A stretch of DNA of 64,000 bases, taken from positions 13,826,001 to 13,890,000 of the forward strand of contig OU015567.1 in assembly GCA_907165135.1 (NCBI GenBank), in the 5' to 3' direction. Source of the DNA: Oikopleura dioica (taxonomy: Eukaryota > Animalia > Chordata). Under the pieces are notes generated by a model that had not been told where the DNA came from, ran no database searches, and saw only the letters and a program-made list of their open reading frames with translations. The translations under genes were made by a program, and so were the position numbers. This document shows positions 1,417 to 25,514 of the stretch, piece by piece (positions within the stretch are counted from its first letter, which is position 1; every line of letters begins with the position of its first letter).

Positions 1417-4400
1417 TTATTCATCCTTGTTTTTCTTTCTCAGCCTTGTTTGAAGCTTGAGTACGCTTGCTCTCAATCGCTCGAGTTTTTCGTTCATCTG
1501 TCGCATCACTTCTTTTGGCTCCTCGTTTTCATCCTCCTTGGTTTCAATTATGAGCAGTTTGAAGGTGGACTGAGTCTGTTACCTTTTCTTTGGCAGTAGC
1601 AACTTCGACTTTTTCGAAGTCAATCAGGTTGTTGATCAAGGAATCAATCGTGTTGTGCTTTAGCGAGTTGATGGAGTTCTTCGCGTCTGAGTCTTTTCCT
1701 GTCGGAGGATATACTTTCAGCTAAAGAAAGAGAGCGCTAGAAATAATTGGTACGCTCAAGAATCTCACCGGAAATTGCCTCAAATTTACAGCGTGATCGC
1801 CAGGTATACGAGGCCAGCAAACAATCGTCGTTCGCCTGCTCTTCTTTTCGCCAAACGAGAAACGAATGTACTTGATCAACAATAAGACATGGTAGACGAG
1901 AATTAGTGGCGTTGGGATCGGGTCCTTTCCCCAGTAGTCCATGACGAGATCAAATCTGTTGAGTTTCCAGATCTTGTCCGAGTCTTCTTGGACCTGCTCG
2001 TACGTAGTCGCAAACAGAGCTACCAGAAGATTGATAAGCATCACATTCGCAGCCATCATATAAACGCCAAGAAAGAAAGAATTCACAAAATATCGTTCTG
2101 AAAAGATTTGCGAGAAATTGAAACCAAGGCGATAAAATCTTCCAAACCTGGACATCTGCTGAATTTTTCGCGTAAAAGAGTAAGAGTGTCTTTTGATGAA
2201 CAATTCCTTGAGGAATAACTGCAGTTTCTTTCTCCGTCTTTCCGTCTTCTGCTAAAATTCGACTCAGTTAATACTAACACCAATAATCGCCAAAGATTAC
2301 TTTCTGTCTGAACCGAGATATAGTCGACATCATCGTCGTGGAAATATTCTAGCAAAAGCATTTCCGATGTCAAATCTTTTCGCACCACAGATTTGTCATC
2401 GGGGTACTCGGGAAAGTAAAGGGTTTTGAAGTTTTGGAGCTTTTGATTCTTGTTCTTGGATCCTTCGGCTGGAATGTTGCTCATGAAATTGGGATTTGTG
2501 TAGTTGAAGCGTCGTTTGTCTGTTTTGCGGTTGGGAAACAATAAAATTGACAAATAGCCCTATGATCATTATTAACCGTTCTCGAAAGAGTAAACGATCA
2601 TCGCCGCTAGTACAACTGGCTGTTTTTTGCTTGAAGTACAAGGATCGATTTTCTCATCAACAGAACAACTTGGCAGCAGATCATTGAATGTTAGCTTCAC
2701 TCCCTTTGTTACGCGTCTATGAAAGACATCCAGTTTCCACTCCGCTAAACTCATTTTTAGCAATATTTTTCAAAGGTAACATACTTTCGCCCAATCGATC
2801 TGAAACGGGGATTTCTTCATTTTCGAATTTGTAAACATCCTGTGTTGGAAAAATGTGAAGGCCTTCCACGGGTGTATTTATGTGATTGCCGATTGCTTTG
2901 TACAATTCCATCGCTGCTTTTTGGCTGTCACTGGGGTCTTTATTCGCTGGGTCATTTTCAGCATTCAGAATATCTTCCTCCATAAATGGGCTTTATTGGC
3001 GAATATAAATTGGCTAGACAAAAAATTTTCGAAAAAAAATCAAAATTTCAATGATTTTAATTTCATTTTCGTCTTTTCCTGAAAACAAAGTACTCGTAAT
3101 TCTCCATGTCAGTACCTTCGAAGTCTTGAAACATATAATCAAAGTCACCACTTTGGTCAGAATCTCGTTTGCTTTCAGTTGGTAGCAAAGGCCTAAATTT
3201 TGCGATTTCATCCTTCGAGATGCGCAAGACGCGAACTTTGCTGAAGCAATCACCGAAAATCGCCGTCAGTGAGACAGGAGGTAACTCTGTAGCGTTTGCT
3301 TCGTTGCTCTTCAAATACGAGTCAATCAAAAGCTTGCTCGGTTAAATTTACCTCTAAGAAGGAACACTCAATGGTTCCAGAAGAAGTAGTATTTGTGCTA
3401 GAGCCTTCTCCGAAATTGCAATCGTAATTTGTCAAATAAAAAGCAGTAATCTGAGTCATGTGCTCAGGAGAACATTCGTTCCATAATTTGATGTCGCGTT
3501 CCCATTCGTGTGTAAAGTTTTTCATTATCGGAGTAACTCGGACAAAGTCGAAGCCCGAATACAGATCGTTTTCAGTTTCGATGGACCGAATGTCTTCTGC
3601 CTCCACGCATCCGTCGAGCTCGCTGTTGAACTCGTAGTTGGTATATTCTGTGAGAAACAGGTCTCCGTAGAGATTGAGGATTGGCTTGAAGAAGATGCCC
3701 TCCATACAATCAGCAAGTCTCACTTCGTTCGGATACAGTAAAGCTGTAGTAATGACACCATACGGGACAAGGAAAACTGCAAGAATAAAAATAAACATCA
3801 TCAAATCGCGCATCATTCTTCCAATAGAGATCGCCAAGGGACCCAAAAGCTTGTGAATATCATAAAAGTGAAGAACAGCCATGCACATGATTAGGTAAGT
3901 GATGCCGTAGAAGATCTGCGCCCACTTCAAGAATTTCGGGTTTTCGAATGAAGAGTTCTCGAGGATATGAAGTGGGCAATAATTAAGTGATGCCGGATGG
4001 TCTTCCATGCCGTTGATGTATTCAAAGGGGTAGATTCCGTAGTTGTCTTCGACGAATTTTTTTGCTTCCGGAGACATTTCTGTGTAAAGCGGATTGTTGG
4101 CATTCGAAAAGAAGGAAGAGATGACGGAAAATTTGTATTTATCTTGAAAGTCCTCCCAGCTCGACGTATTGTAAAGGTTGATTTTTTTATTCGGGAGATT
4201 TTCAAAGGACTTCATGTTGATCAAATAAATATCCTCGTAGGAAACGATTGAGCTTGCCCTGAGAATAATGCCAGCCAAGAATGTAGCGATCGCAAGGAAG
4301 TATAAAATATTCCAAGTGTCATGGTACATGAGTCGTATCTTTTCGCTCTTTGTCTTGTCCGCTATTGCTATAAACTTCCTAATTCGTTCGAGTTGAATAC

Positions 4401-5803
4401 TGACCATCCAAATCATAAGGAGGTATTCGAAGAAAGTAATTCGGATGCAAAATTTTAGCAGAATAACGTAAGCAAAGAGGCCAAGAAAGGCGAGGTAGGA
4501 AACGACTTCAATGATGAAACAATAGAGCGGTGACGTGCAGAAGTTGGAAATCACCATCAATTTGCTTTCATAAAGTCTGTCAATTTAATTGGCAATTAGA
4601 CTTCCGCGATAAGTCTAGGTCGTATCATTTACGATTAATGAGATATTTATTGCTTTCAGACTTTGCCTTGGGTTGTCTTCTTCATTTGTGGACATTCCCA
4701 AGCTCTTGACTTGCTTGCCGCCCCAGAAGAAGCCCGACTTCATATAGGAAATCCTGTCAATGTACGGGTCTTTTGAGGGCTTCATGAAAAATGGCACTAA
4801 CAACGGGCAGACTGAACACATAGCAAGGCGAAAATTCGTGGTTGGTTCAAGTCCACCAGTCCAAATTTTGTCAAGCAAGTCTTGAACAGCGTCTGTTGAC
4901 ATGAAGTTACCTAGACGAGCTTGTTCTGCCAGCTGAAGAGCTGTCCTCTTTCCCCAGTGTCGATTCTCGATTCTGATCAAAAGAAGACACTGATCGTAGT
5001 CCATCTCGTAGCATGAAGTTATCAGCTCAACAGTGTACTCCTCAATTTTTTCCTGCTGCTCTTTGTACGAGCTCTGCAGTTCTGATAAAGTGATGTACTT
5101 TTCGGTGACCAAGCGGCAGTTGTGAATGAGAAATGCAATGCCAAGTTCAACCCCAAGAACTGTTCCTAGATTTTCTCCTGCATCTTCTTCAGAACACCTG
5201 GCGTCTTTTGAAACGCTCTCTTGCTCCTTCACGTGATCTCGGATTGTATCTACAAGCTCCCATCGGTTAAAAAGGCAGCTCCACATCGCCAGCTCGCGCA
5301 CGACAAATGCTCTGCCGCATTTTTCTTCAGGAGGATCTTCCTCTTCTCTTTCTTCGTTCTCTCCTTCTCGAAAGGCCTTTTCCTCAGCTTTCCAGTTTTC
5401 GGGAAGGATCCATTCCATGTCCATAATCGGCTTGTCAGGAGCTCTAACCCATTCTTGACGTCTGGTCTCAAAAAAGGAATTGTCCGAAAGAAGCTTTTCA
5501 TCGAAAATGTTTAACAATTCGACAAAAATAGAAAGATTTGGTGTATTTGGCGCAGCTTGCGGTGGAGCTAAAATGAATTATTGAAGAAGGTATTTCAGTT
5601 ATTTGAGCTAGTCAGCGGAATTAATATTCTAAATTACCTTCAACATCTTTTTTGACTTTCTTTTGGCGATTATTTTGTCTTATGGCATCATCTATTTTAT
5701 CATTGAGTAATTTCTCGAACAATGTTCTCTGGTAATTAAAAGTATAGAGCTCGAATAGTAACCTCGGTGTTACTTTTTTTGGATTCTCTAGTAGGTCCTC
5801 CAT
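1417..5803 (-). CDS. TRPM-like transient receptor potential channel (multi-exon; 5' end uncertain, may extend to ~6050)
   Basis: MHR4-like WGKRTALQLA..QDLLDKIWTG; S1-S5 in ORF 3322-4560 including LGPLAISIGRMMRDL; S6 and TRP helix NVMLINLLVALFATTYEQVQEDSDKIWKLNRFDLVMDY; C-terminal coiled-coil exon ending at TAA 1417. Confidence 0.85.
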
Positions 5804-6272
5804 TTCGTATTCGAAAAAAACAAGGGGAGAGAGGAATGAGACCTTTTCTCGATCTGTGAGATTAAATGGGAAAGGTTGTCTGCAATCGTAAAATTTAGTT
5901 AACGCTTCGGAAAAGTCGTAAATTGCTTTTGCGTTGTTTGTGGCAGTATCTTCAAGAAAAGAGTGTTCTGATAGTAAGAAACAAGTTCTTATTCAAAATA
6001 AATTATCTTTTATGATAACCAGCGTAACCTCTATCCACCCGCCATGTTTATAGCACGATATAAATCTCCATAATCCAGCACTACTTTCAAACCTTTCTCA
6101 GCTTAGCTATAACTCCAACTACACATCAAACCGCAAGAACTACAAAAAAAGAGACAATAGGGAAAATTAATTATATAACCCCCTTTATTGAACTAAAAGA
6201 ACAAGAAAGAACTAGCAGAACAGTAAAGAGGGAACAGAATTAAAAAGGTTTGAAAGGGAGGGGTGAGAGTGT

Positions 6273-8238
<1,966 letters not shown>

Positions 8239-8936
8239 GTTGTTACTTCTTTCTTAGCTTGTAAAGCAATTCAGAATGAAGTGTTTTTCACTTTTCCGGC
8301 GCTTTTATACTCCGCGGCGAAAAATCGTTTCTAGAATTTCGCGTTCGAGAGATTTTTGCAAAACTCGAAGCTGAATTTTTCAAACTTCCAAGGCGCGGCA
8401 AAGGACGAAGATGACGAATTTCTTCGAGATTTTTAGCGAATCGGAAAGAGCAAAACGCGGACTATCGGATGGTAGCTAAATAAGACGAATTTGATGAATG
8501 GGTTGTGTTTTATGGACGAAAAAGCCCCAATTTCTCCGGAATTTCGATCATCAGCCGAGGTTGTTGTTGAGATTTGTTTTCATTTCTTGGCTCTAGAATT
8601 CTAGAGATTTCCGGAGAAAATCAACATTTTCGCGCGACTTTTGACTAAATTTGCCCACTTTTTCGTCGAAAATCGCCATTTGCGAGAAATCTCACCGTTA
8701 AAAATTTTTGTGAAAGAGTTTAATGCAAAGAGTTGACTACCGGCAAGGTTTGGCCAAAAAATTTTTCAAATCTATCGGTTGAATTTTTTTCTAGAGCTCT
8801 TTTTGTACTCTTATTTCCGTTTTTGATGAACAATTGTCGATTGGTTCTTTTTCTTTCATGTTTATTCACCTTCATGATGAAATACTCTCTTATTATTTAT
8901 TTATTGATGTATTTTTGAGCTTTTTTTAATCGAAGT

Positions 8937-17210: not shown

Positions 17211-18577
17211 ATTCAATCAAAACCATGTTCTTTATTAAACAAGTTAAATCAATCACAGAAAACAAAAATTTCTTAGATGTGCTCTTTCACATCTTTTAGT
17301 GGGTATTGACTTGTAAGAAGATGATCGTAGTATAGAATTGTTCCAGCGAGCGTTAAAAAAGCAATGATAAATGTAAACTGGTCGATTTTCCGCACAACTT
17401 CTTTTCGGAGATTTTTTAGGTTTTCTTCTTTTTCCGTTTCATCGTACTTTCGCTTATAAAAATTATTGACTCAAGATTTGATAAATGCTTTGAAAACCTG
17501 CAGCTGTTTCCGTAAGCGACTGACTTGAAATGTCAGTCTCGTAATTTTGCAGTTGACCTCGCTTGCTTTCAGCCCAGACATACTGTCAGCCATAAAACTG
17601 TGCGTCTCTTGCGAATCGTACAAACACCCTCTTCGGCCATCGTCGATATTTGAGAAGGTCTTGAAACTTTTCATCTTGCTGGAAAAAATTCCAGTGAAAA
17701 TGTTTCGAAATCTAGGGTAGATATTCGCGACAAAGAGCATCTTTTTGGGTTCCATCAATAAAATTTTTGATTGGTCGGTAGGCTAAATAGAACCTTCTGA
17801 TTGGCTTAAAACTAGATGGAACCAAAACCCACGCGGGGACAGTTTTTTCTGAAGAATGAAGCTCCTCTGTCACGATAGTTGTTTCTATAAATGCAGCGAT
17901 ACAAACACTAGAGAATACATTCATCGATACAGTATAAATCCACTTACAAATTAATGTAGAAAATGATATCAAGCAAAAGAGGAGTGTTAGCCAGGGTGTC
18001 AAATCGCGGGGGATTTTGAAGGGATCGCGCGCCACAGCGCCGTTTCGATCCCACGGTGTAAGGGATCGCCTCGCAGCGAGAGGCAACGAGAAGGGAGCGC
18101 TCACATAAACAAAGGGATCGCGCCGATCCCTTCGCGCGTGGGATATCCCTTCGCGCAAGGGATCTTAAAATTCCGAAAACGAGCGACCTTGTAAAAATTC
18201 AATAACAATCAATTTTTAATGCAAAAAAAGATCAACATATAATAATCCTTACTTTTTTAACGAAAATACTAAGAAAAATTATGCCATAATTAATCCGACT
18301 TTGGGTTATTCAATGAAAAAAATAATATTATTCATGTAAAAATTCACCATGATTCTGACTTCATCACAGCTGGTTGGTACCTCGAGTCTTTTCACGTCTT
18401 TTCTGTGATTTCATCTCCAGCTGCTTGGAAATAAACCCTTCATATCTGATTCTCGCAGCGGGGTGTTACTCAGATACTTTACTAATGATCGGAAATCAGT
18501 CCATCTGCAGAAGGACGCCATCTTTCCAGATGTACTGTCAATATAAAGTCCGTCAAAAATGAAATTTTTTCGTAAAT

Positions 18578-21500
18578 ATGAGTCAAAAACGGCCATTTGA
18601 TGAAGGTCCTTTGCTTTCTCCGCCATCTACTCCATTCGAGAAAAAGAAAAAAACCAAAGATGAGTTCAAGAAAATTGTAGAGATTCTAGAAGAAGATGAG
18701 AAGCTCGTTTGCACTTCAGAGATCCATCACAATTACACAGCAGATTTCAAACTAGAGAAAATCACGAAGTCAGACCAGACGCCGACGCCATATCTCATTT
18801 GCCGGAGCCCCTTCTGCACTAATGCTGAATACAAACATAAGGTAAGAAAAAATTGACCAGATTTGAGTTAAAATTAACCTTTTTCATGTTAAAATTGACC
18901 CCTTTCCATGTAAAAATTGACCTTTTTCATGTAAAATTTGACGCATTTCATGTAAAAATTGACCCCTTTTATGTAAAATTTGACCTTTTTCATGTTAAAT
19001 TTGACCTTTTTCATGTAAAAATTGACCTTTTCATGTAAAAATTGATCGGTCGTGAGAAAAAATTAGCCGTTTTAATGTTAAAAACGACCAGTCAAGTAAG
19101 ATTAACTCTTTTATAGGTTTTCTTTGGCATTCGAGGCAATTTGGCGAAAGCGAGCCATGCGACTGACTACTACGTGAAACGGCACATCCAAGAACACCAT
19201 CGTTCAATTACAACCGACGCCGAAGAGCTTGAGGAAATCGCCGCGGAAGCTGTTGCGAACGATGGTCTTTCAATTGGTGCTTTCGAAACCGAAACAATGA
19301 AGAAATTTTGCGCAAGGGCTCATAAGGCAATAGCGAATGGAATAAGCAGTCACAAAATTGTGAAGATTCTCAGGTAAAAATTAACCATTATATTTGGATA
19401 TATAAATTTTTAAGGCGCAAAAGTACCGTTTCGAATGGTATCGTCAAGTCCAAGCTGCCTGGTCTCATCCAGGAAAACAGATGTTGCTTGGTCCTTGATG
19501 GATTCGACTGCCCTCGGCTAACGAAAGAAAGAAGTAGCAAATACCTTGGGGTCTTCATCGGCTTTTACGATTCGAACCTGCGAAAGACACGATTTTTCTT
19601 CTTCATTACGGGGTCATCTTCAAAGCAACTGATGCGAATGTACGTCGACAACTAGAAAGCGTCCTCTCGGATTGGAATATCCTCGAGTTTTTTCACGCAA
19701 AACGACTTCCAGTTGTTGGAGATGCGCCAATGGCTCAGGCCTTCTCCGACTACTTCGCCGTTGTCTGTGCAAGCCACACGATTTCGAATCAGTTAAAAAG
19801 GTAAATACATCATTCTTATTTTATCAAATAACGTCTTCACTTTAGATATATTACCCTTGTCCAGAGCGATGCAATCGTCGGCGATAGCTGTGTCGAGATC
19901 GAGAAAGCGGTCTCAGCATGCAATCATCGAGCTGAACGAGACGACTGCTCCGAGAAATCCTTCAATGATCTGGTGAAAAGCTACACTCCAACTGAAGACG
20001 AGCTCAAGCACATCAGGCAATTCTACCCGAATTACGACAAATTCGTTACGATCGACAGGATCTATTACATCAGATTCAGGTTTGTTCTTCATCATTGCAT
20101 GTAACAATTGACCTTTTCCATGTAAAGATTGACCCATTCCATGTAAAAATTGACCCTTTTCGTGAAAAATTTGACCCTTTTTATGTAAAAATTGACCGTT
20201 CCAATGTAAAAATTAACCCTTATATGTAAAAATTAACCCTTTCAATGTAAAAATTGACCCTTTTCATGTAAAAATTAACCGTTTCACGATAAAATTAACC
20301 GAGGTCATGTTTAAACTAATCGAAAATATGTAATTATTAACTTTATCTTTCAGATCTTTCATCACGACCTACAAGCAGCTCATGGCAAACGAACCTCTTC
20401 TTCGTCGCCATCAGAAGTACCTGACTGACTCAAAGTCGATCTTACACGAAATCGACTGGAAGCTCGTTCATTACCTCCACTCAGTCTCCCAAGTCTTCGA
20501 GCCTGCTCTGGCGTCGACCGATTCGGATCACTTCTCGGTTGGTGACACTCTTACAAAACTGTTCGACTTGCTGAAATTCTTGCTTCAAATTGATCCGGCT
20601 GACTTCAAGGAAATCCACCAGGAGCTGATTCTGACCGTAGCAGACTACATTTTCGGTGCTAACATCACTGGACGGAAGCCATCGAGAGGATCCTACATCA
20701 AATCGAGAGCAAATCCAGCTGCTTTGATCGGGCTCTCCCTTGACTTCTTTAGCCGTCACTTCGAATTCACCTTGATCCGTAACCGACTTGACGACGCCTT
20801 TGAGAAGGATTCGTTCATCACGAAGTCTACATACGACACCCTCATCAATTGCTTCGATACTGCAGTTCCTGTCTGGAAGGAGACAATGCGCAAGACCTTC
20901 TTTGACCTAGCTGAGCAAACCAAACCAATTGAGGAAATCTTCATTCTTGTAAGTAAAGGTTAATTTTTACCCGGAGCTGGTTAATTTTTTCCCAAAAAAG
21001 GTTAATTTCTACCAAGTTTCGATTAATTTTTGCATTAAGCGGTAAATTTTTACACGAAATCGGGTGAATTTTTCATAGAAAAGGTCCATTTTTACTCAGA
21101 CGCGATCAATTTTTACATAAAACAGCATTAATAATTAACTTTATTTTAGGTTCCTGTTGAAAACCAGCAACAGAAGACACCATCAGCAGCTCCTTCATCA
21201 CAGCCAAAGACGTTGACTCCTCCAAACTCACAGGAGCGCGCTCCGCCGACACCTCCATCTTCTCAAGCAAAGTCGACTTTCGAGGAAGAAATGGAGCAAT
21301 ATTCGAGCGACGAGGATGAATGCGAAAAATCATCAACTGATGAGTTCTCTGCATGGTTCAAGAGGGAGAGCAAGATGGAGCGCAAAGAAAGCGTCAAAAG
21401 ATACAAGCAATGGTTGAACCAGCTCGATCCCATGTTCAAGACCTCCGCCAGTACGGCCGAACGGAGCTTGATGTATTTCACGCATCACGCTGGAACTTAC

Positions 21501-21683
21501 CCGACATTCGCCAGAATCGCACAACTCATACGCTCAACTCCTGGCTCAAGCGGCAGCATCGAACGTCTCTTCTCAAAAGCGAACGATATCATGTCTTCAA
21601 AACGAAACTGCTTGAACACCAGTACTGTTGAACTCATTCTACAAGTGTCTTCTTATCCAAATGTACAGAATCTATTTGAATAA
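18578..21683 (+). CDS. hAT transposase (about 6 exons)
   Basis: NLS-like KKKK; BED-like CRSPFC...HIQEHH; putative catalytic D in CLVLDGF and VVGDA; CxxH motif CASH; C-terminal YPTFARIAQLIRSTPGSSGSIERLFSKA with the catalytic E. One frameshift in the T5 run at 19593-19597. Confidence 0.9.
18850..19045. repeat. 21-bp minisatellite (CATGTAAAAATTGACCYTTTT) in transposase intron 1
   Basis: About 9 tandem units seen directly. Confidence 0.9.
20098..20310. repeat. Same 21-bp minisatellite in transposase intron 4
   Basis: About 9-10 tandem units of ATGTAAAAATT(G/A)ACCC. Confidence 0.88.
20958..21120. repeat. Degenerate 21-bp minisatellite, reverse orientation, in transposase intron 5
   Basis: GGTTAATTTTT units recurring at ~21-bp period. 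Confidence 0.7.
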
Positions 21684-21714
21684 ATGTTTTTTGCTGACAA
21701 TTTCCCGTCGAAAT

Positions 21715-21965
21715 CATGCATTTATTAACCTTTTGCATGCAAAAATTAACCAAATTCATGAAAAAATTAACCTTGATCATGCAAAAATATCCCTTTTTTA
21801 AGTATAAATTGACCGAGGTCATGTAAATATTAACCGAATTCATGAGAAAATTAACCTTGATCATGCAATAATTAACCCATTCTAAGCATTAATTGACCGA
21901 GGTCATGCAAATATTAACCATTTTCAAGAAAAAATTTACCTTAGTCGCGCAAAAATTGACCAAAA
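21715..21965. repeat. 21-bp minisatellite downstream of the transposase stop
   Basis: CATGCAAAAATTAACC-type units at ~21-bp period. Confidence 0.82.
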
Positions 21966-22005
21966 TCGGATAAATCAGGCTTTAAGTCGATTAAAACGCC
22001 CTTAA

Positions 22006-22445
22006 ATGGCCCTTAGCCAATCAAACCGATCTCAAATGGCTCTTAGCCAATCAAAACGCTCGAAAATGTCTATCAGCCAATCAAAACGCTCGAAAATGCC
22101 CCTTAGCCAATCAAAACGCTCGAAAATGTCTATTAGCCAATCAAAACGCTCGAAAATGCCCCTTAGCCAATCAAAACGCTCGAAAATGTCTATTAGCCAA
22201 TCAAAACGCTCGAAAATGTCTATCAGCCAATCAAAACGCTTGAAAATGCCCCTTAGCCAATCGAAACGCTGCAAAATGTCTATCAGCCAATCAAAACGCT
22301 CGAAAATGCCCCTTAGCCAATCAAAACGCTCGAAAATGTCTATTAGCCAATCAAAACGCTCGAAAATGTCTATCAGCCAATCAAAACGCTTGAAATGTCT
22401 ATCAGCCAATCAAAACGCTCGAAACTGTCTATCAGCCAATCAAAA
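22006..22445. repeat. 30-bp tandem repeat; each unit carries AGCCAATC (CCAAT box); 15 copies
   Basis: CCAAT starts at 22017, 22047 ... 22377, 22406, 22436; unit AGCCAATCAAAACGCTCGAAAATGYCYMTY. Confidence 0.95.
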
Positions 22446-22596
22446 ATCTACGTATCAAAAACGATTTTGAGGCCTCATTTTTTGAGGGTCTTTGAGCCGT
22501 TAAGCATTCAGAACCAAGAATATGTTATTTTTGAAAATTCTCTAGAATTATTATTCTTACGTTTGAAAAAAAAACGAAAAAAATCAGTTTAGAAGT

Positions 22597-23719
22597 ATGA
22601 CAAGAAAGGCTTGGAAGTTCCCCATGGCGTGCACGATTTGTTTGAAATCTGTGAAGCCACAAACATTAGACTGGCACTTTTCTCATTACCATGTGGAAAT
22701 ACGACCATCTGATCGAGTCAATTATGTAACCAAGTGCGTTATTTCATCAGAAAAAATAACTTTTCTCAGGAAAATGTTTGAACAGGGGTCTAAATTCGCA
22801 GTGCCAATTCGCTTTTTTTTGCGAAACCCTAGCACTTATTCCATGCACAGAAATTATCAAACAAATAAAAGATCTCTTGAAATTGATGAGAACGACCCGG
22901 GTAGATCGAAGATTCGAGCAACATTCGTGGATAATATGAATAGATCTAAGTCTCGCTTGATTGAAGTTAATTCAATCTTAAAGTCTAAAGCAAGAGTTTC
23001 ACAATAAAAAAATTATTTAAAGAGAAGTTACTTATCACAACGAAACGCGTGAAAAGAGCCGTTGCTGTTTTTGATCAACCATTTGGTGAATAATCGCATA
23101 TCAACGCTTCCTGCCAATGTTTCTTATATCGGTAGGTTTATCAAATTCAAAACTCTATAAAAAGCAAAAAATGATAAAAAGATGCTTAAAAAACACGTCT
23201 TCACGACTCGAAAGCGTGCCGCGGCATCTCGAAATCATTTTCGACTTCGTTTATTGAATATATTTGTCTTACAAATATATGGAGATGACCCTCTCCAAAT
23301 TGATCCTCCCGTTCTTCTTATTCCCGCTGATCCAATGGAGTGGTAAGCTAGGGTCGGACTTCCTTCCTTAATTTTTTGCTTTCTAAGGGTCCTTTCCTTA
23401 GTAAGGTAAGGATGTTTTACTTACCTTTTTTCGGGTTTCGGCGGAAAAAAATCCTTCCAATAGTTCCTTTCTGAGTTTTCAGAGATCATCAGATTCATCA
23501 ATTTCAAAACCCTTACCCTTAGTAACTAAGGAAACCTAAGTAAGGGGTCCGACCCCTTCACATTTTAACATATTATTTAGTCCCATTGGTCGAGATGATT
23601 GTCAAAAAGTATTTGCTGCTGCTCAATGCGAAAAGTGTCCACCAATGTGCTTGGCGTGTCACAAAAGAAGCCTTCCTCCTCATTACCGCTGTCCCTTTTG
23701 TCGACAGACAATGATGTAA
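22597..23719 (+). CDS. Transposon accessory gene: C2H2-like zinc finger at the N-terminus, RING-like domain at the C-terminus
   Basis: CTIC-x11-H-x4-H near the start. The last two exons (23165-23342 and 23581-23719) splice GT-AG in frame to give ...DPME-CPIGRDDCQKVFAAAQCEKCPPMCLACHKRSLPPHYRCPFCRQTMM*. The junction near 22990-23075 is ambiguous. Confidence 0.65.
23351..23556. mobile_element. Small nested inverted-repeat element filling an intron of the accessory gene
   Basis: Imperfect TIR GGGTCGGACTTCCTTCCTTA / TAAGTAAGGGGTCCGACCC; internal CCTTA/TAAGG repeats; no clear TSD. Confidence 0.45.
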
Positions 23720-25514
23720 TTTCTTTCTTTTTTTAAATAATATAATCAGACAAACTTATTAAACTTAATTTGAACATGAGTTTAATTTCAATCAGAAAAA
23801 GGAGGAGAAAAAACTACACTAGATCTGAAAAATTCATAAAATTTGAGACAATAACGAAGAGTTCTGAGTTTTTGAAAAGCGGCGCGAGCTTGATCGGAGA
23901 AAATTCCACGCATGAAGCCTGGCGCTAGCCCGCGCGTTTGCTCTGCTATTTTCGCCGCGATCCCTTTCCGTTCAAAAAGCGCGCGAGCGATCCCTTCAGA
24001 CTTGGGATCGAGCGTGGGCGGTGGCGCGCGATCCCTTCTCGATCCCCCGCGATTTGACACCCTGGTGTTAGCGGATTGAGGAACAAGCGAATCCAGCAAA
24101 TTCAGCGTAAAAACCATCGACAAATGAATCGCAATTGTGTAACCAACCCTAAATAACCATCATCCTTACTTGGATTATCAATTGCTTTACCGTTCACCGG
24201 TCTCGATGGGGATCATGAAAATAGCGAGTGATGCCAGTCCAAGAATATACAAGGGGAAGACGACGATCATTCTCCCATGGCGATATCTACGGACGACCTC
24301 GATTTCGCCGGACAGAATATGCGCATTGAACAGTCGAGAAGACTAGAATTTGTTAATGAATATGATTTACATATTGCTGACTTACATTTTTGTCGAGCAT
24401 TGTTTCATTGTTCGGAATCGCGTCTGAAATCAATGAAATCAAGGAAGAGAACAAAAATAGACTCACTTGTGACTTCTGAGCGCGTGTCAGTTACCAGCCA
24501 CTTTGTGTGAAAGGTATTTATCGACGGATTGACGAATATCTTATTCGATTCCTGGGCCAAATGAACATCCGTCCCTTGCGACATTGCTTGAATATAACAG
24601 TAGTGCCTGTCGTACGGGTAAAACTTCGACTCGATGTTGCAAAATCCGACGTACTTAAAATATTCATAAAACTGGTGCTTACTAAAGGAGACATACGTAA
24701 AATGTCTTGAGAACCCAGACGCGTCCGTCGCTGTGAACAGTCGCCAGCTCTTAATGGATCGTTACGTAATCATACAGTTACTTTACTGTCCTCCCGATTT
24801 TACCTTCATCGAGATCGCCATTTTCTCCCTCTGTGTTGATGTTTTGAAATTTCAACTTGGGGAACCAAATTTTATCGATCGGAACAGTAATGTTCGCGAA
24901 ATCAAATTCGGACGCGTTCCACGTGAGCCGAGGGTCATTCCACTCGTAGTACGCCATAAAGTTGCCGTCGAATTTCGACTCCGGGCAATCAACGTTATTG
25001 AGCCAGATCATCTGGATTCGTAATTTGACGACTGTTTGATTTCGATTCTGAATGTTTTCAGTGAAGCAATAGAAAATGGACAGATGTCATTGAAAAATTG
25101 ACATTCAATAAAAACGATAAAGGGTCCAAGAGGTCATCATTTGTGGTAGACGGTTCATGATGACCCCTACAAAGTTTGTTAATTGAAGAAAACCTTAATT
25201 GATGGCACAAGTTGCAAGGCAAATCTTTTGACTCTCCTACAGTAGATCGTCAATTTTCTAAGCTCAGCATTTTGATGAGGAAAATCGACAATCTTGGGCC
25301 ATCAATCTGGATCTCCAGTCAACAAACTTCGAGAAGTAAACTTTAAAAAATAAGATGAGAAAATGCAATTTCAGTTTTCGCACCAAGAATTAAGATATTT
25401 AAAAATTCGACATTTATCTGACTTACTAACTTTAAGAAGGCACAGGTTTTCTCACATTTTTTTCAACAAGAAAATTCAAATATAGAAAATAATGAAGATT
25501 TTTCAGAGTCAAAA

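Follow-up and report, generated by a model that had tools for sequence, protein, structure and literature searches.

The DNA analysed here, referred to as the window, is a stretch of 64,000 nucleotides (nt) from the Okinawa Oikopleura dioica assembly OKI2018_I69 (G000:C5:13826001-13890000), and coordinates given without a chromosome name are positions in this window. It contains a DNA transposon of the hAT superfamily that carries, downstream of its transposase gene, a second gene on the plus strand (22597-23719), with a 30-bp CCAAT array before it and the right end of the element after it. Homologues of this accessory gene occur in two further hAT lineages of the same genome; the lineage of the window element is termed A, the other two B and C. 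We read the window element as a recently inserted hAT that is part of a clade of two-gene hAT elements, an interpretation held with moderate confidence.

The element is delimited by short terminal inverted repeats (TIRs) of the CAG/TAG type, here CAGGG...: CAGGGTGTCAAATCGCGGGGGAT opens the element at 17992, and its reverse complement closes it at 24064. Target-site duplications (TSDs) of 8 bp, as expected of a hAT, flank the window element, the lineage C element and, once an inversion is undone, both copies of lineage B. The last piece of the transposase open reading frame (ORF) matches Pfam PF05699 (Dimer_Tnp_hAT) with an E-value of 2.1e-9 (37.5 bits, cut-off 21.4) and the C-terminus of the Hermes transposase with an E-value of 3e-5. 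In the ORFs 18578-18856 and 19141-19377, a C-x4-C ... H-x3-H arrangement is visible, without a Pfam match; among all the pieces of the window compared with Pfam, the transposase C-terminus alone gave a match. The features of the element are as follows.

17984..17991, no strand: left TSD copy GTGTTAGC, read directly, identical to 24065-24072
17992..24064, plus strand: hAT transposon of lineage A, 6,073 bp, with TIRs, 8-bp TSD and hAT dimerisation domain
17992..18069, plus strand: left terminal and subterminal inverted repeat, TIR CAGGGTGTCAAATCGCGGGGGAT, 79 nt, 82% complementary to 23987-24065
18578..21683, plus strand: multi-exon hAT transposase gene, open pieces 18578-18856, 19141-19377, 20382-20963 and 21213-21683
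18849..19045, 20098-20301, 20955-21013 and 21724-21961, plus strand: four 21-bp tandem arrays among the transposase ORF pieces
22013..22445, plus strand: 30-bp tandem array of 14.5 copies, each with GCCAATCA (CCAAT box), ending ~150 bp 5' of the accessory start codon
23987..24064, plus strand: right terminal and subterminal inverted repeat, paired with the left end
24065..24072, no strand: right TSD copy GTGTTAGC, a perfect 8-bp match to the left copy

The accessory gene would consist of three to four short exons encoding a protein of about 200-215 amino acids (aa), predicted to have an N-terminal C2H2-like zinc finger, a Lys/Arg-rich middle and a C-terminal eight-cysteine RING-derived domain. 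Its first ORF (22597-23007, 136 aa) begins MTRKAWKFPMACTIC...; its start, as far as the finger, reads MTRKAWKFPMACTICLKSVKPQTLDWHFSHYH. The finger ligands Cys12-x2-Cys15-x11-His27-x4-His32 lie at 22630-22692; the spacing C-x2-C-x11-H-x4-H is found in A and B, and C-x4-C-x11-H-x4-H in C. Compared to the classical rule C-x2-4-C-x12-H-x3-5-H, the linker is one residue short. The Lys/Arg-rich middle probably directs the protein to the nucleus or contacts nucleic acid. A second open stretch (23161-23342) ends with ...PADPME followed by TG, and the frame resumes after an intron with T and CCC..., giving (C)PIGRDDCQKVFAAAQCEKCPPMCLACHKRSLPPHYRCPFCRQTMM and the stop codon; the last exon thus reads (C)PIGRDDC..CEKC..CLAC..CPFCR. 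The parts of the gene are given below.

22597..22787, plus strand: exon 1 with start codon and finger, 53% aa identity to lineage B over 59 codons
22788..22850, plus strand: putative intron 1, 63 nt, GT..AG, the least conserved stretch, between conserved blocks
22851..22993, plus strand: exon 2 (RSLEIDEN...SKA), same frame in all three lineages, 33% aa identity to B and 45% to C
22994..23164, plus strand: 171-bp filler insertion, absent from B and C, where the sequence is contiguous; direct repeat AAAGCAA at both sides; stop at 23005-23007
23165..23342, plus strand: exon 3 with the basic region (KKMLKKHVFTTRKRAAA), the LLNIF motif, PPVLLIPADPME and two bases of the first RING-like Cys, 52% aa identity to B and 38% to C
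23343..23580, plus strand: GT..AG intron within the first Cys codon of the RING-like domain, TG before it and T after it
23581..23719, plus strand: last exon with the eight-Cys RING-derived domain and the stop codon; all Cys kept in A, B and C; profile match to the relative P0002

The segment 22788-22850 is probably one more intron of the gene, as predicted from its poor conservation and from the only two indels that separate the window and C1 copies of lineage A inside the gene, both of which fall in it. The initial annotation had claimed a spliced second gene inside the TIRs and downstream of the transposase, opening with CTIC-x11-H-x4-H and ending with eight cysteines that a list of ORFs misses because of an intron. 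All these positions are borne out by the TIRs and TSD, the PF05699 and Hermes matches, the four finger ligands and the GT..AG intron that splits the first Cys codon. Its gene model stands for the motifs, their order and this intron, but is incomplete, as an in-frame stop has to be spliced out for finger and RING to be part of one protein.

AG dinucleotides (tcag, ttag) lie 4-10 nt 5' of the accessory start codon in both A (22585-22596) and B (L031 5105-5117). They are candidate spliced-leader acceptors, and the gene could therefore be co-transcribed with the transposase in an operon-like manner.

The tandem arrays also extend beyond the window element. The 30-bp CCAAT array is found in lineage B (L031 about 4600-4990), and lineage C has a 22-bp unit in inverted arrays (L036 6122-6237 and 9165-9318). 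Arrays of this kind are conserved in the hAT clade and probably serve as binding sites for the transposase. A TGTAAAA...CC core is common to the units of the window element (21 bp, CATGTAAAAATTGACCC...) and of the C3 element (22 bp, CTGTGTAAAATAAGTCCC...). Just beyond the left end of the element, a short inverted match to the CCAAT-array unit (AGCCAATCA...) at 17763-17806 is perhaps the remnant of another element.

Homologues in other hAT lineages and selection

Homologues of the accessory gene were sought with protein and profile searches of the whole genome (64.28 Mb in 19 pieces, the longest 17.09 Mb). Lineage A comprises the window copy, two C1 copies within a ~96-kb segmental duplication, a partial degenerate copy beside each, and a 1.8-kb deletion derivative. 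The C1 copies are 98-99% alike to the window element and have identical ends; the window and C1 copies are separate insertions. At L033 (C1:729900-739899), a lineage A copy has another one, truncated and frame-shifted, directly beside it: this second copy breaks off at base 350 of its accessory gene, where it meets the left TIR of the first without a matching TSD. The arrangement recurs as a duplicate ~96 kb away (C1:634-645 kb).

Lineage B has two members, at C4:376493-382430 (L031) and C4:391232-397170 (L032), with the same TIR as the window element and an accessory gene (C4:381.4-382.2 kb) that is open over 204 aa if a 42-nt GA..AG intron is accepted, an intron type often seen in this species (PMC8008620). 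The two copies are 99.98% identical and inverted relative to each other, with swapped 8-bp flanks (TGCTCCAG/AACAGGGA versus AACAGGGA/TGCTCCAG), which points to two independent insertions with perfect TSDs, followed by inversion of the intervening 8.8 kb. This segment was apparently inverted through recombination between the inverted copies, and would thus represent a transposon-mediated rearrangement. The genome of O. dioica is known for its scrambling.

Lineage C (C3:1543877-1548386, 4,510 bp) belongs to a different hAT-type family, with a 17/17 TIR (CAGTGTTTGAAAAAAG), the TSD GGTTCGAC and about six short derivatives that carry its ends. Its accessory gene (C3:1547.4-1548.2 kb) has an intact four-exon model of 196 aa with GT..AG introns of 40-44 nt, the third of which (40 nt) agrees with the window intron 23343-23580 both in the Cys codon that it splits and in its phase. 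The other gene of this element lies on the strand opposite to the accessory gene and has no match in Pfam; it is a putative transposase, judged only by the motif FWTDPGIISRFPRLAKVATKV and the hAT-type ends of the element. A decayed lineage C fragment at C4:5670908-5671155 has lost its Cys residues.

Common to A, B and C are the eight C-terminal Cys, the finger ligands, a basic motif RKRAxA, a (Y/L)N(I/L)F motif and a conserved start of the protein, M-(P/T)-R-(K/A). Neither the profile nor the protein searches of the whole genome found accessory copies outside hAT elements or their fragments. Homologues with the same motif order and the same eight Cys in two other hAT lineages, together with the relatives from another lineage of the species described below, argue that the second gene is more than a chance association. 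A separate nested element was considered as the source of the cassette and rejected: no TIR or TSD surrounds it, no pairs of inverted repeats lie near its boundaries at 22450 and 23955, and in A, B and C alike it sits at one and the same place.

Superposition of lineages A and B revealed a mosaic. Their backbones are 86-91% identical at the nt level over 17992-22450 and over the last 110 bp (23955-24064), whereas the ~1.5-kb cassette in between has no nt similarity and retains 38-53% aa identity in four collinear blocks. With a backbone about 12% diverged and a saturated cassette, the mosaic is best explained by recombination that would have swapped whole cassettes between hAT lineages.

Over 180 aligned codons, the A and B proteins are 45% identical, with a nonsynonymous divergence (dN) of 0.59 and a synonymous divergence (dS) at saturation, exceeding 2 or undefined; the first, second and third codon positions agree in 50, 63 and 43% of cases. 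A total of 80 substitutions and nine indels separates the window copy from the C1 copy. Among these, the accessory exons have four substitutions in 651 nt and no indels, compared to 20 in 968 nt and five indels in the non-coding parts of the cassette (Fisher p 0.02), and resemble the transposase ORFs with 12 in 1569 nt. A dN far below dS and the few changes in the exons argue that the gene is maintained by selection rather than being decaying cargo. The comparison between lineages indicates that it is under purifying selection and has been kept over a long period, and the comparison among the A copies that it has probably been under selection recently as well.

A decaying fragment of a captured host gene, acquired by Pack-type transduplication and without any role, could also place foreign sequence between transposon ends, and the 171-bp filler in this very gene is itself foreign DNA from C2. 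But the whole-genome profile and protein searches found no parent gene outside hATs, and the gene recurs in three hAT lineages here and, beyond this genome, in a further lineage of O. dioica, its exon structure and Cys/His residues being conserved and dN far below dS, so that this explanation is largely refuted and scarcely credible. The initial annotation had itself named a single-copy decaying host fragment and a nested element with its own TSD among the ways in which it might fail, and neither was encountered; the test that it had proposed, for homologues confined to hATs across divergent families with dN/dS below 1, agrees in outcome with the present findings. Altogether, the comparisons show a gene under constraint that belongs to these elements and has moved along with three or more hAT lineages.

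Insertions in the lineage A gene

The accessory gene of lineage A has received two insertions, a filler in an exon and a miniature inverted-repeat transposable element (MITE) in an intron. The filler is bounded by the 7-bp repeat AAAGCAA and contains the stop of the 136-aa ORF. Two pieces of it match a C2 locus (L040), where they lie 1 kb apart: C2:6766322-6766363 (93% over 42 nt) and C2:6767334-6767385 (100% over 52 nt). Having no TIRs and being composed of these two pieces, the filler was rejected as a MITE. It looks like templated DNA from template-switching repair rather than a transposon, which is plausible because O. dioica relies on end joining mediated by microhomology (PMC11067885). 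With 6/171 substitutions between the window and C1 copies, the filler has the highest substitution density of the cassette, as expected of non-coding sequence.

In this copy, the full protein would be made only if the filler is spliced out as an extra intron; otherwise, a finger-only product of about 115 aa is expected. Removal of either GA22994..AG23164 or GT22996..AG23181 restores the frame, according to a scripted count of length and stops. The median intron of this species is 49 bp long, and 11% of its introns are non-GT/AG (PMC8008620).

Several observations weigh against a functional accessory gene. The filler brings an in-frame stop into the window copy and the closely related C1 copies, and the candidate splice sites are weak (acceptor ...ataaaaag). 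Four RNA runs labelled O. dioica, three oligo-dT and one single-cell, gave no reads on 18200-24100, a result that speaks neither for nor against transcription, as the runs may come from another cryptic lineage. O. dioica is in fact a set of deeply diverged cryptic lineages (PMC11067885). The family is small, with about three, two and one full copies in A, B and C, respectively, and the deletion derivative L034 lacks the accessory gene. Moreover, copies bearing the filler have still transposed, and the gene may thus be dispensable in cis.

It is therefore a serious possibility, although short of a probable one, that the lineage A gene is a pseudogene or a truncated gene, whose frame ends in the filler after about 115 aa and whose RING-like exons stay untranslated, with the gene being real at the level of the family. 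Such a loss would fit a stop at 23005-7 inside an insertion that B and C lack, the poor candidate splice sites, the presence of the insertion in all three A copies, which implies that it was transposed along with them, and the frame-shifts and stops of the second A copy on C1. Yet the exons 3' of the filler remain open, with three substitutions in 317 nt and no indels against 6/171 in the filler, albeit in small numbers; two in-frame removals of the filler exist, and the share of non-canonical introns in the species (11%; PMC8008620) leaves room for either. On balance, the copy in the window is possibly interrupted.

The intron 23343-23580 contains a truncated MITE copy at about 23348-23556. 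The MITE family is characterized by the TIR CTAGGGTCGGAC, perfect 8-bp TSDs of hAT-like type and a length of about 520-570 bp, and at least 15 other copies were found in the genome, including full ones such as L007 (C3:2373113-2373664), L009, L010 and L013; their identity of 90-98% indicates a recently active family. The MITE inserted exactly at the splice donor, and its TSD (GTGGTAAR) duplicated the GTAA donor and left the exon boundary unchanged. Behind this TSD, the C1 copy keeps the 3' part of an old intron of ~51 nt, of which the window copy has lost 32 bp. An origin of the intron from the MITE itself was rejected, given the remnant of the old intron in the C1 copy and the common position in lineage C and the relatives; the segment is instead an old intron that later received the MITE. 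One locus thus shows a MITE landing at an intron donor and a filler landing in an exon, which bears on the origin of larvacean introns.

The C-terminal domain and relatives outside this genome

A word-indexed protein search with the 136-aa ORF gave no match, nor did an exact look-up of this ORF in assemblies. When the C-terminal alignment was compared as a profile, exhaustively, with 1.84 billion representative proteins, one true relative emerged, P0002, with an E-value of 7e-4 (pairwise 3e-12 to lineage C). The contig of P0002 and four related JGI contigs, L041-L044 (Ga0314674_10145816, Ga0314710_10011699, Ga0314681_10018663 and Ga0314693_10009294, respectively), carry internal-deletion hAT derivatives. 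In these derivatives, the transposase exon is 36-48% identical to that of the window, and the accessory parts are 39-48% identical to lineage C. The host ORF of L043 runs uninterrupted over 443 aa, whereas its counterpart in this genome, 81-94% identical, has six or more exons; the contigs are therefore mRNAs from a related lineage of O. dioica and carry the element in their 3' untranslated region (UTR). The host genes with hAT derivatives in the 3' UTR are an aminotransferase gene and a mitochondrial ribosomal protein L3-like gene. L042 and L044 derive from one host gene and differ in the internal structure of the element.

In L042 and L044, a 40-nt GT..AG intron is retained in the same Cys codon, whereas L043 lacks exactly these 40 nt. 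This exact loss implies that splicing does take place at these sites in the relative, at least in its read-through transcripts. The same contigs bear on a rival model, in which the finger and RING parts would belong to the transposase gene as alternative 3' exons. In L041, L042 and L044, transposase-like exons are indeed joined to accessory ones; in A and B the accessory exons lie on the same strand 3' of the transposase, and the AGs just 5' of the start codon are possible acceptors. Against this, the other gene of lineage C is on the opposite strand, a second type of two-gene hAT (E-type, see below) has its finger/RING gene upstream of the transposase, all lineages have the conserved start M-(P/T)-R-(K/A) of their own, and the three contigs look like internal-deletion derivatives within host 3' UTRs. 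We consider alternative exons very improbable and return to a separate accessory gene.

The C-terminal domain of the window protein has the ligand pattern C-x6-C-x8-C-x2-C-x3-C-x2-C-x10-C-x2-C. Like RING-HC and C4C4 RING fingers (RNF4, TRIM, CNOT4), it has eight metal ligands, follows C-x2-C-x3-C-x2-C-x10-C-x2-C from the third ligand onwards and ends with CPFCR. The resemblance is closer in the relative, which reads ...ECPIFTSDC-x9-CGHTFCTNC-x10-CMICR, with a canonical C-x-H-x2-C-x2-C...C-x2-C core in which the CGHTFCTNC...CMICR of a RING-HC finger is evident. P0002 also matches seven families of the RING clan in Pfam, with E-values from 1e-4 to 1e-2. Database searches and folding were applied to single exons, the exons being joined only to count length and stops. 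In the structure predicted for the L043 domain, a helix comes after a hairpin, and Foldseek matched the model almost exclusively to RING domains (best E-value 0.057, TM 0.54). Language-model neighbours of the B domain are likewise mostly RING families, at scores that provide leads only.

The window domain itself departs from the RING rule applied here, C-x2-C-x9-39-C-x1-3-H/C-x2-3-C-x2-C-x4-48-C-x2-C. Its first pair is C-x6-C instead of C-x2-C and its first loop of eight residues is shorter than the minimum of nine, while the other five spacings fit; the His ligand is replaced by Cys, as in C4C4 RINGs. Further points count against a RING assignment. The C-terminal domains of the window and of B match no Pfam family at E <= 10, and the lineage C domain gives only weak B-box and RING rows. 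A profile search of solved structures (PDB) gave only non-significant matches, to the last third of the RNF4 and RCHY1 RINGs, and no significant match was thus obtained by either hidden Markov model or fold. The RING matches of P0002 are all under the curated cut-offs (zf-C3HC4 20.3 versus 21 bits), and the AlphaFold models are of low confidence, with a predicted local distance difference test (pLDDT) score of 47 for the B exon and 58 for the L043 domain. The finger is no clearer, as that of the window matches no Pfam family and the family as a whole gives only weak rows, with zf-C2H2_12 at an E-value of 0.058 for B.

The label "RING-like" given by the initial annotation is hence partly upheld, by the canonical core of the relative, the seven sub-threshold RING families and the weak RING fold matches, whereas the window domain matches no RING model; the fold and profile comparison that it had suggested, made here on single exons, gave no significant match to a solved RING and models with pLDDT of only 47 and 58. 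We conclude that the C-terminal domain descends from a RING-HC finger that has drifted in this genome, with ligase activity as a candidate property.

Possible function and comparison with known systems

We infer that the accessory gene encodes a trans-acting nuclear protein, in which the finger and basic region contact nucleic acid or chromatin and the RING-derived module contacts proteins or transfers ubiquitin. The most likely activity would be that of a RING-type adaptor or ubiquitin ligase, predicted to be brought to chromatin or DNA by the finger and the basic region. Acting in trans for the element, the protein would be aimed at a host factor rather than at the ends of the element or its transposase. 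Candidate processes would be silencing, turnover of the transposase and break repair; the initial annotation had put forward a VANC-like anti-silencing role or a control of transposase turnover. A host-directed role is favoured because transposase, arrays and ends are almost unchanged between A and B, while the accessory proteins share only 45% identity; the argument is weaker in so far as it presupposes that the cassettes of A and B are both functional. Binding of the accessory protein to the arrays, as the initial annotation had envisaged, appears weakened by the same comparison, the arrays being the same in lineages whose proteins differ this much. The whole account, a two-gene hAT clade with a constrained cassette and a host-directed RING-derived protein, is the one we favour, and we find it modestly probable.

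The position of the gene beside the element end and the arrays, conserved in A, B and C, would equally suit a transposition cofactor without ligase activity, comparable to the Myb-like second protein of PIF/Harbinger elements. Such a protein would bind either the DNA of the element or the transposase, to help nuclear import or the assembly of the transpososome, and its Cys-rich end would be a structural or protein-binding zinc module. The finger and the basic region are consistent with such a cofactor, as is the failure of the window protein to match any RING model. However, a protein with a specific partner in the element fits poorly with A and B transposases, arrays and TIRs that are 86-91% identical at the nt level next to accessory proteins of 45% identity, and the relative keeps a canonical RING-HC core. 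We regard a cofactor as unlikely.

The favoured host-directed reading may be taken one step further, to a RING-derived transposon effector that acts on a host factor in silencing and chromatin or in double-strand-break repair, with cassettes swapped among hATs under an arms race; in this specific form it is an improbable extension. Small viral RING proteins aimed at host factors, such as herpesvirus ICP0 and arenavirus Z, are precedents and functional analogues. hAT excision leaves hairpinned donor ends that require repair, which is one reason why a repair factor would be an attractive target. The other is that canonical non-homologous end joining has been lost in O. dioica, as reported by Deng et al. 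2018 according to the citation in PMC11067885. If the repair version is true, a RING adaptor supplied by the element could influence how excision sites are repaired.

To our knowledge, canonical hATs (Ac, hobo, Hermes and Tol2) encode a transposase only. The window element resembles them in the 8-bp TSD, the short CAG-type TIRs, the subterminal arrays and the C-terminal hAT dimerisation domain, but adds a conserved protein-coding cassette between the arrays and one end. Accessory functions are also found in Mutator (VANC), CACTA and Harbinger elements. A parallel in organization is VANDAL21, a Mutator element of Arabidopsis, which likewise has a fast-evolving, lineage-specific accessory gene beside the transposase and tandem motif arrays in its non-coding parts. 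It belongs to another superfamily, however, and the arrays of the window element are the same in A and B though the proteins differ by 55%. Its anti-silencing protein VANC is not known to have a RING. The PIF/Harbinger elements, with a transposase and a Myb/SANT-like protein, are similar in being cut-and-paste transposons with a second small protein of DNA-binding type conserved across the family. They differ from the hAT element of the window, whose protein lacks a Myb/SANT domain and has a RING-derived one.

Within the same genome, the E-type hAT (C5:8.4565-8.462 Mb; L039 about 2950-8450 = C5:8456450-8461950) is a second two-gene element whose protein has a C-x2-C...H-x4-H finger and a RING-H2-like end (CAIC...H..H..C...CPHCRQ). 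Compared to the window element, its gene is a single exon of 247 aa (L039 3825-4565) located upstream of the transposase, and the element ends are GC-rich and inverted. The similarity of the E-type protein to the A-C profiles is not significant (hhalign E-values of 0.007 and 0.12, low probability).

Taken together, an accessory gene of the finger/RING-derived type is unusual for a hAT, and the present sequences suggest that the window element is part of a hAT clade with a conserved second gene. hATs are among the largest superfamilies of eukaryotic DNA transposons and are regarded as one-gene systems. A hAT clade that keeps and exchanges a second gene through deep divergence shows that hATs too can evolve accessory functions, and would be an example from a chordate. 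If the protein is a ligase or adaptor acting on host factors, it could be relevant to hAT-based gene-transfer tools and would offer a handle on how transposons are controlled in a very compact, transposon-poor genome, and on how transposons respond.

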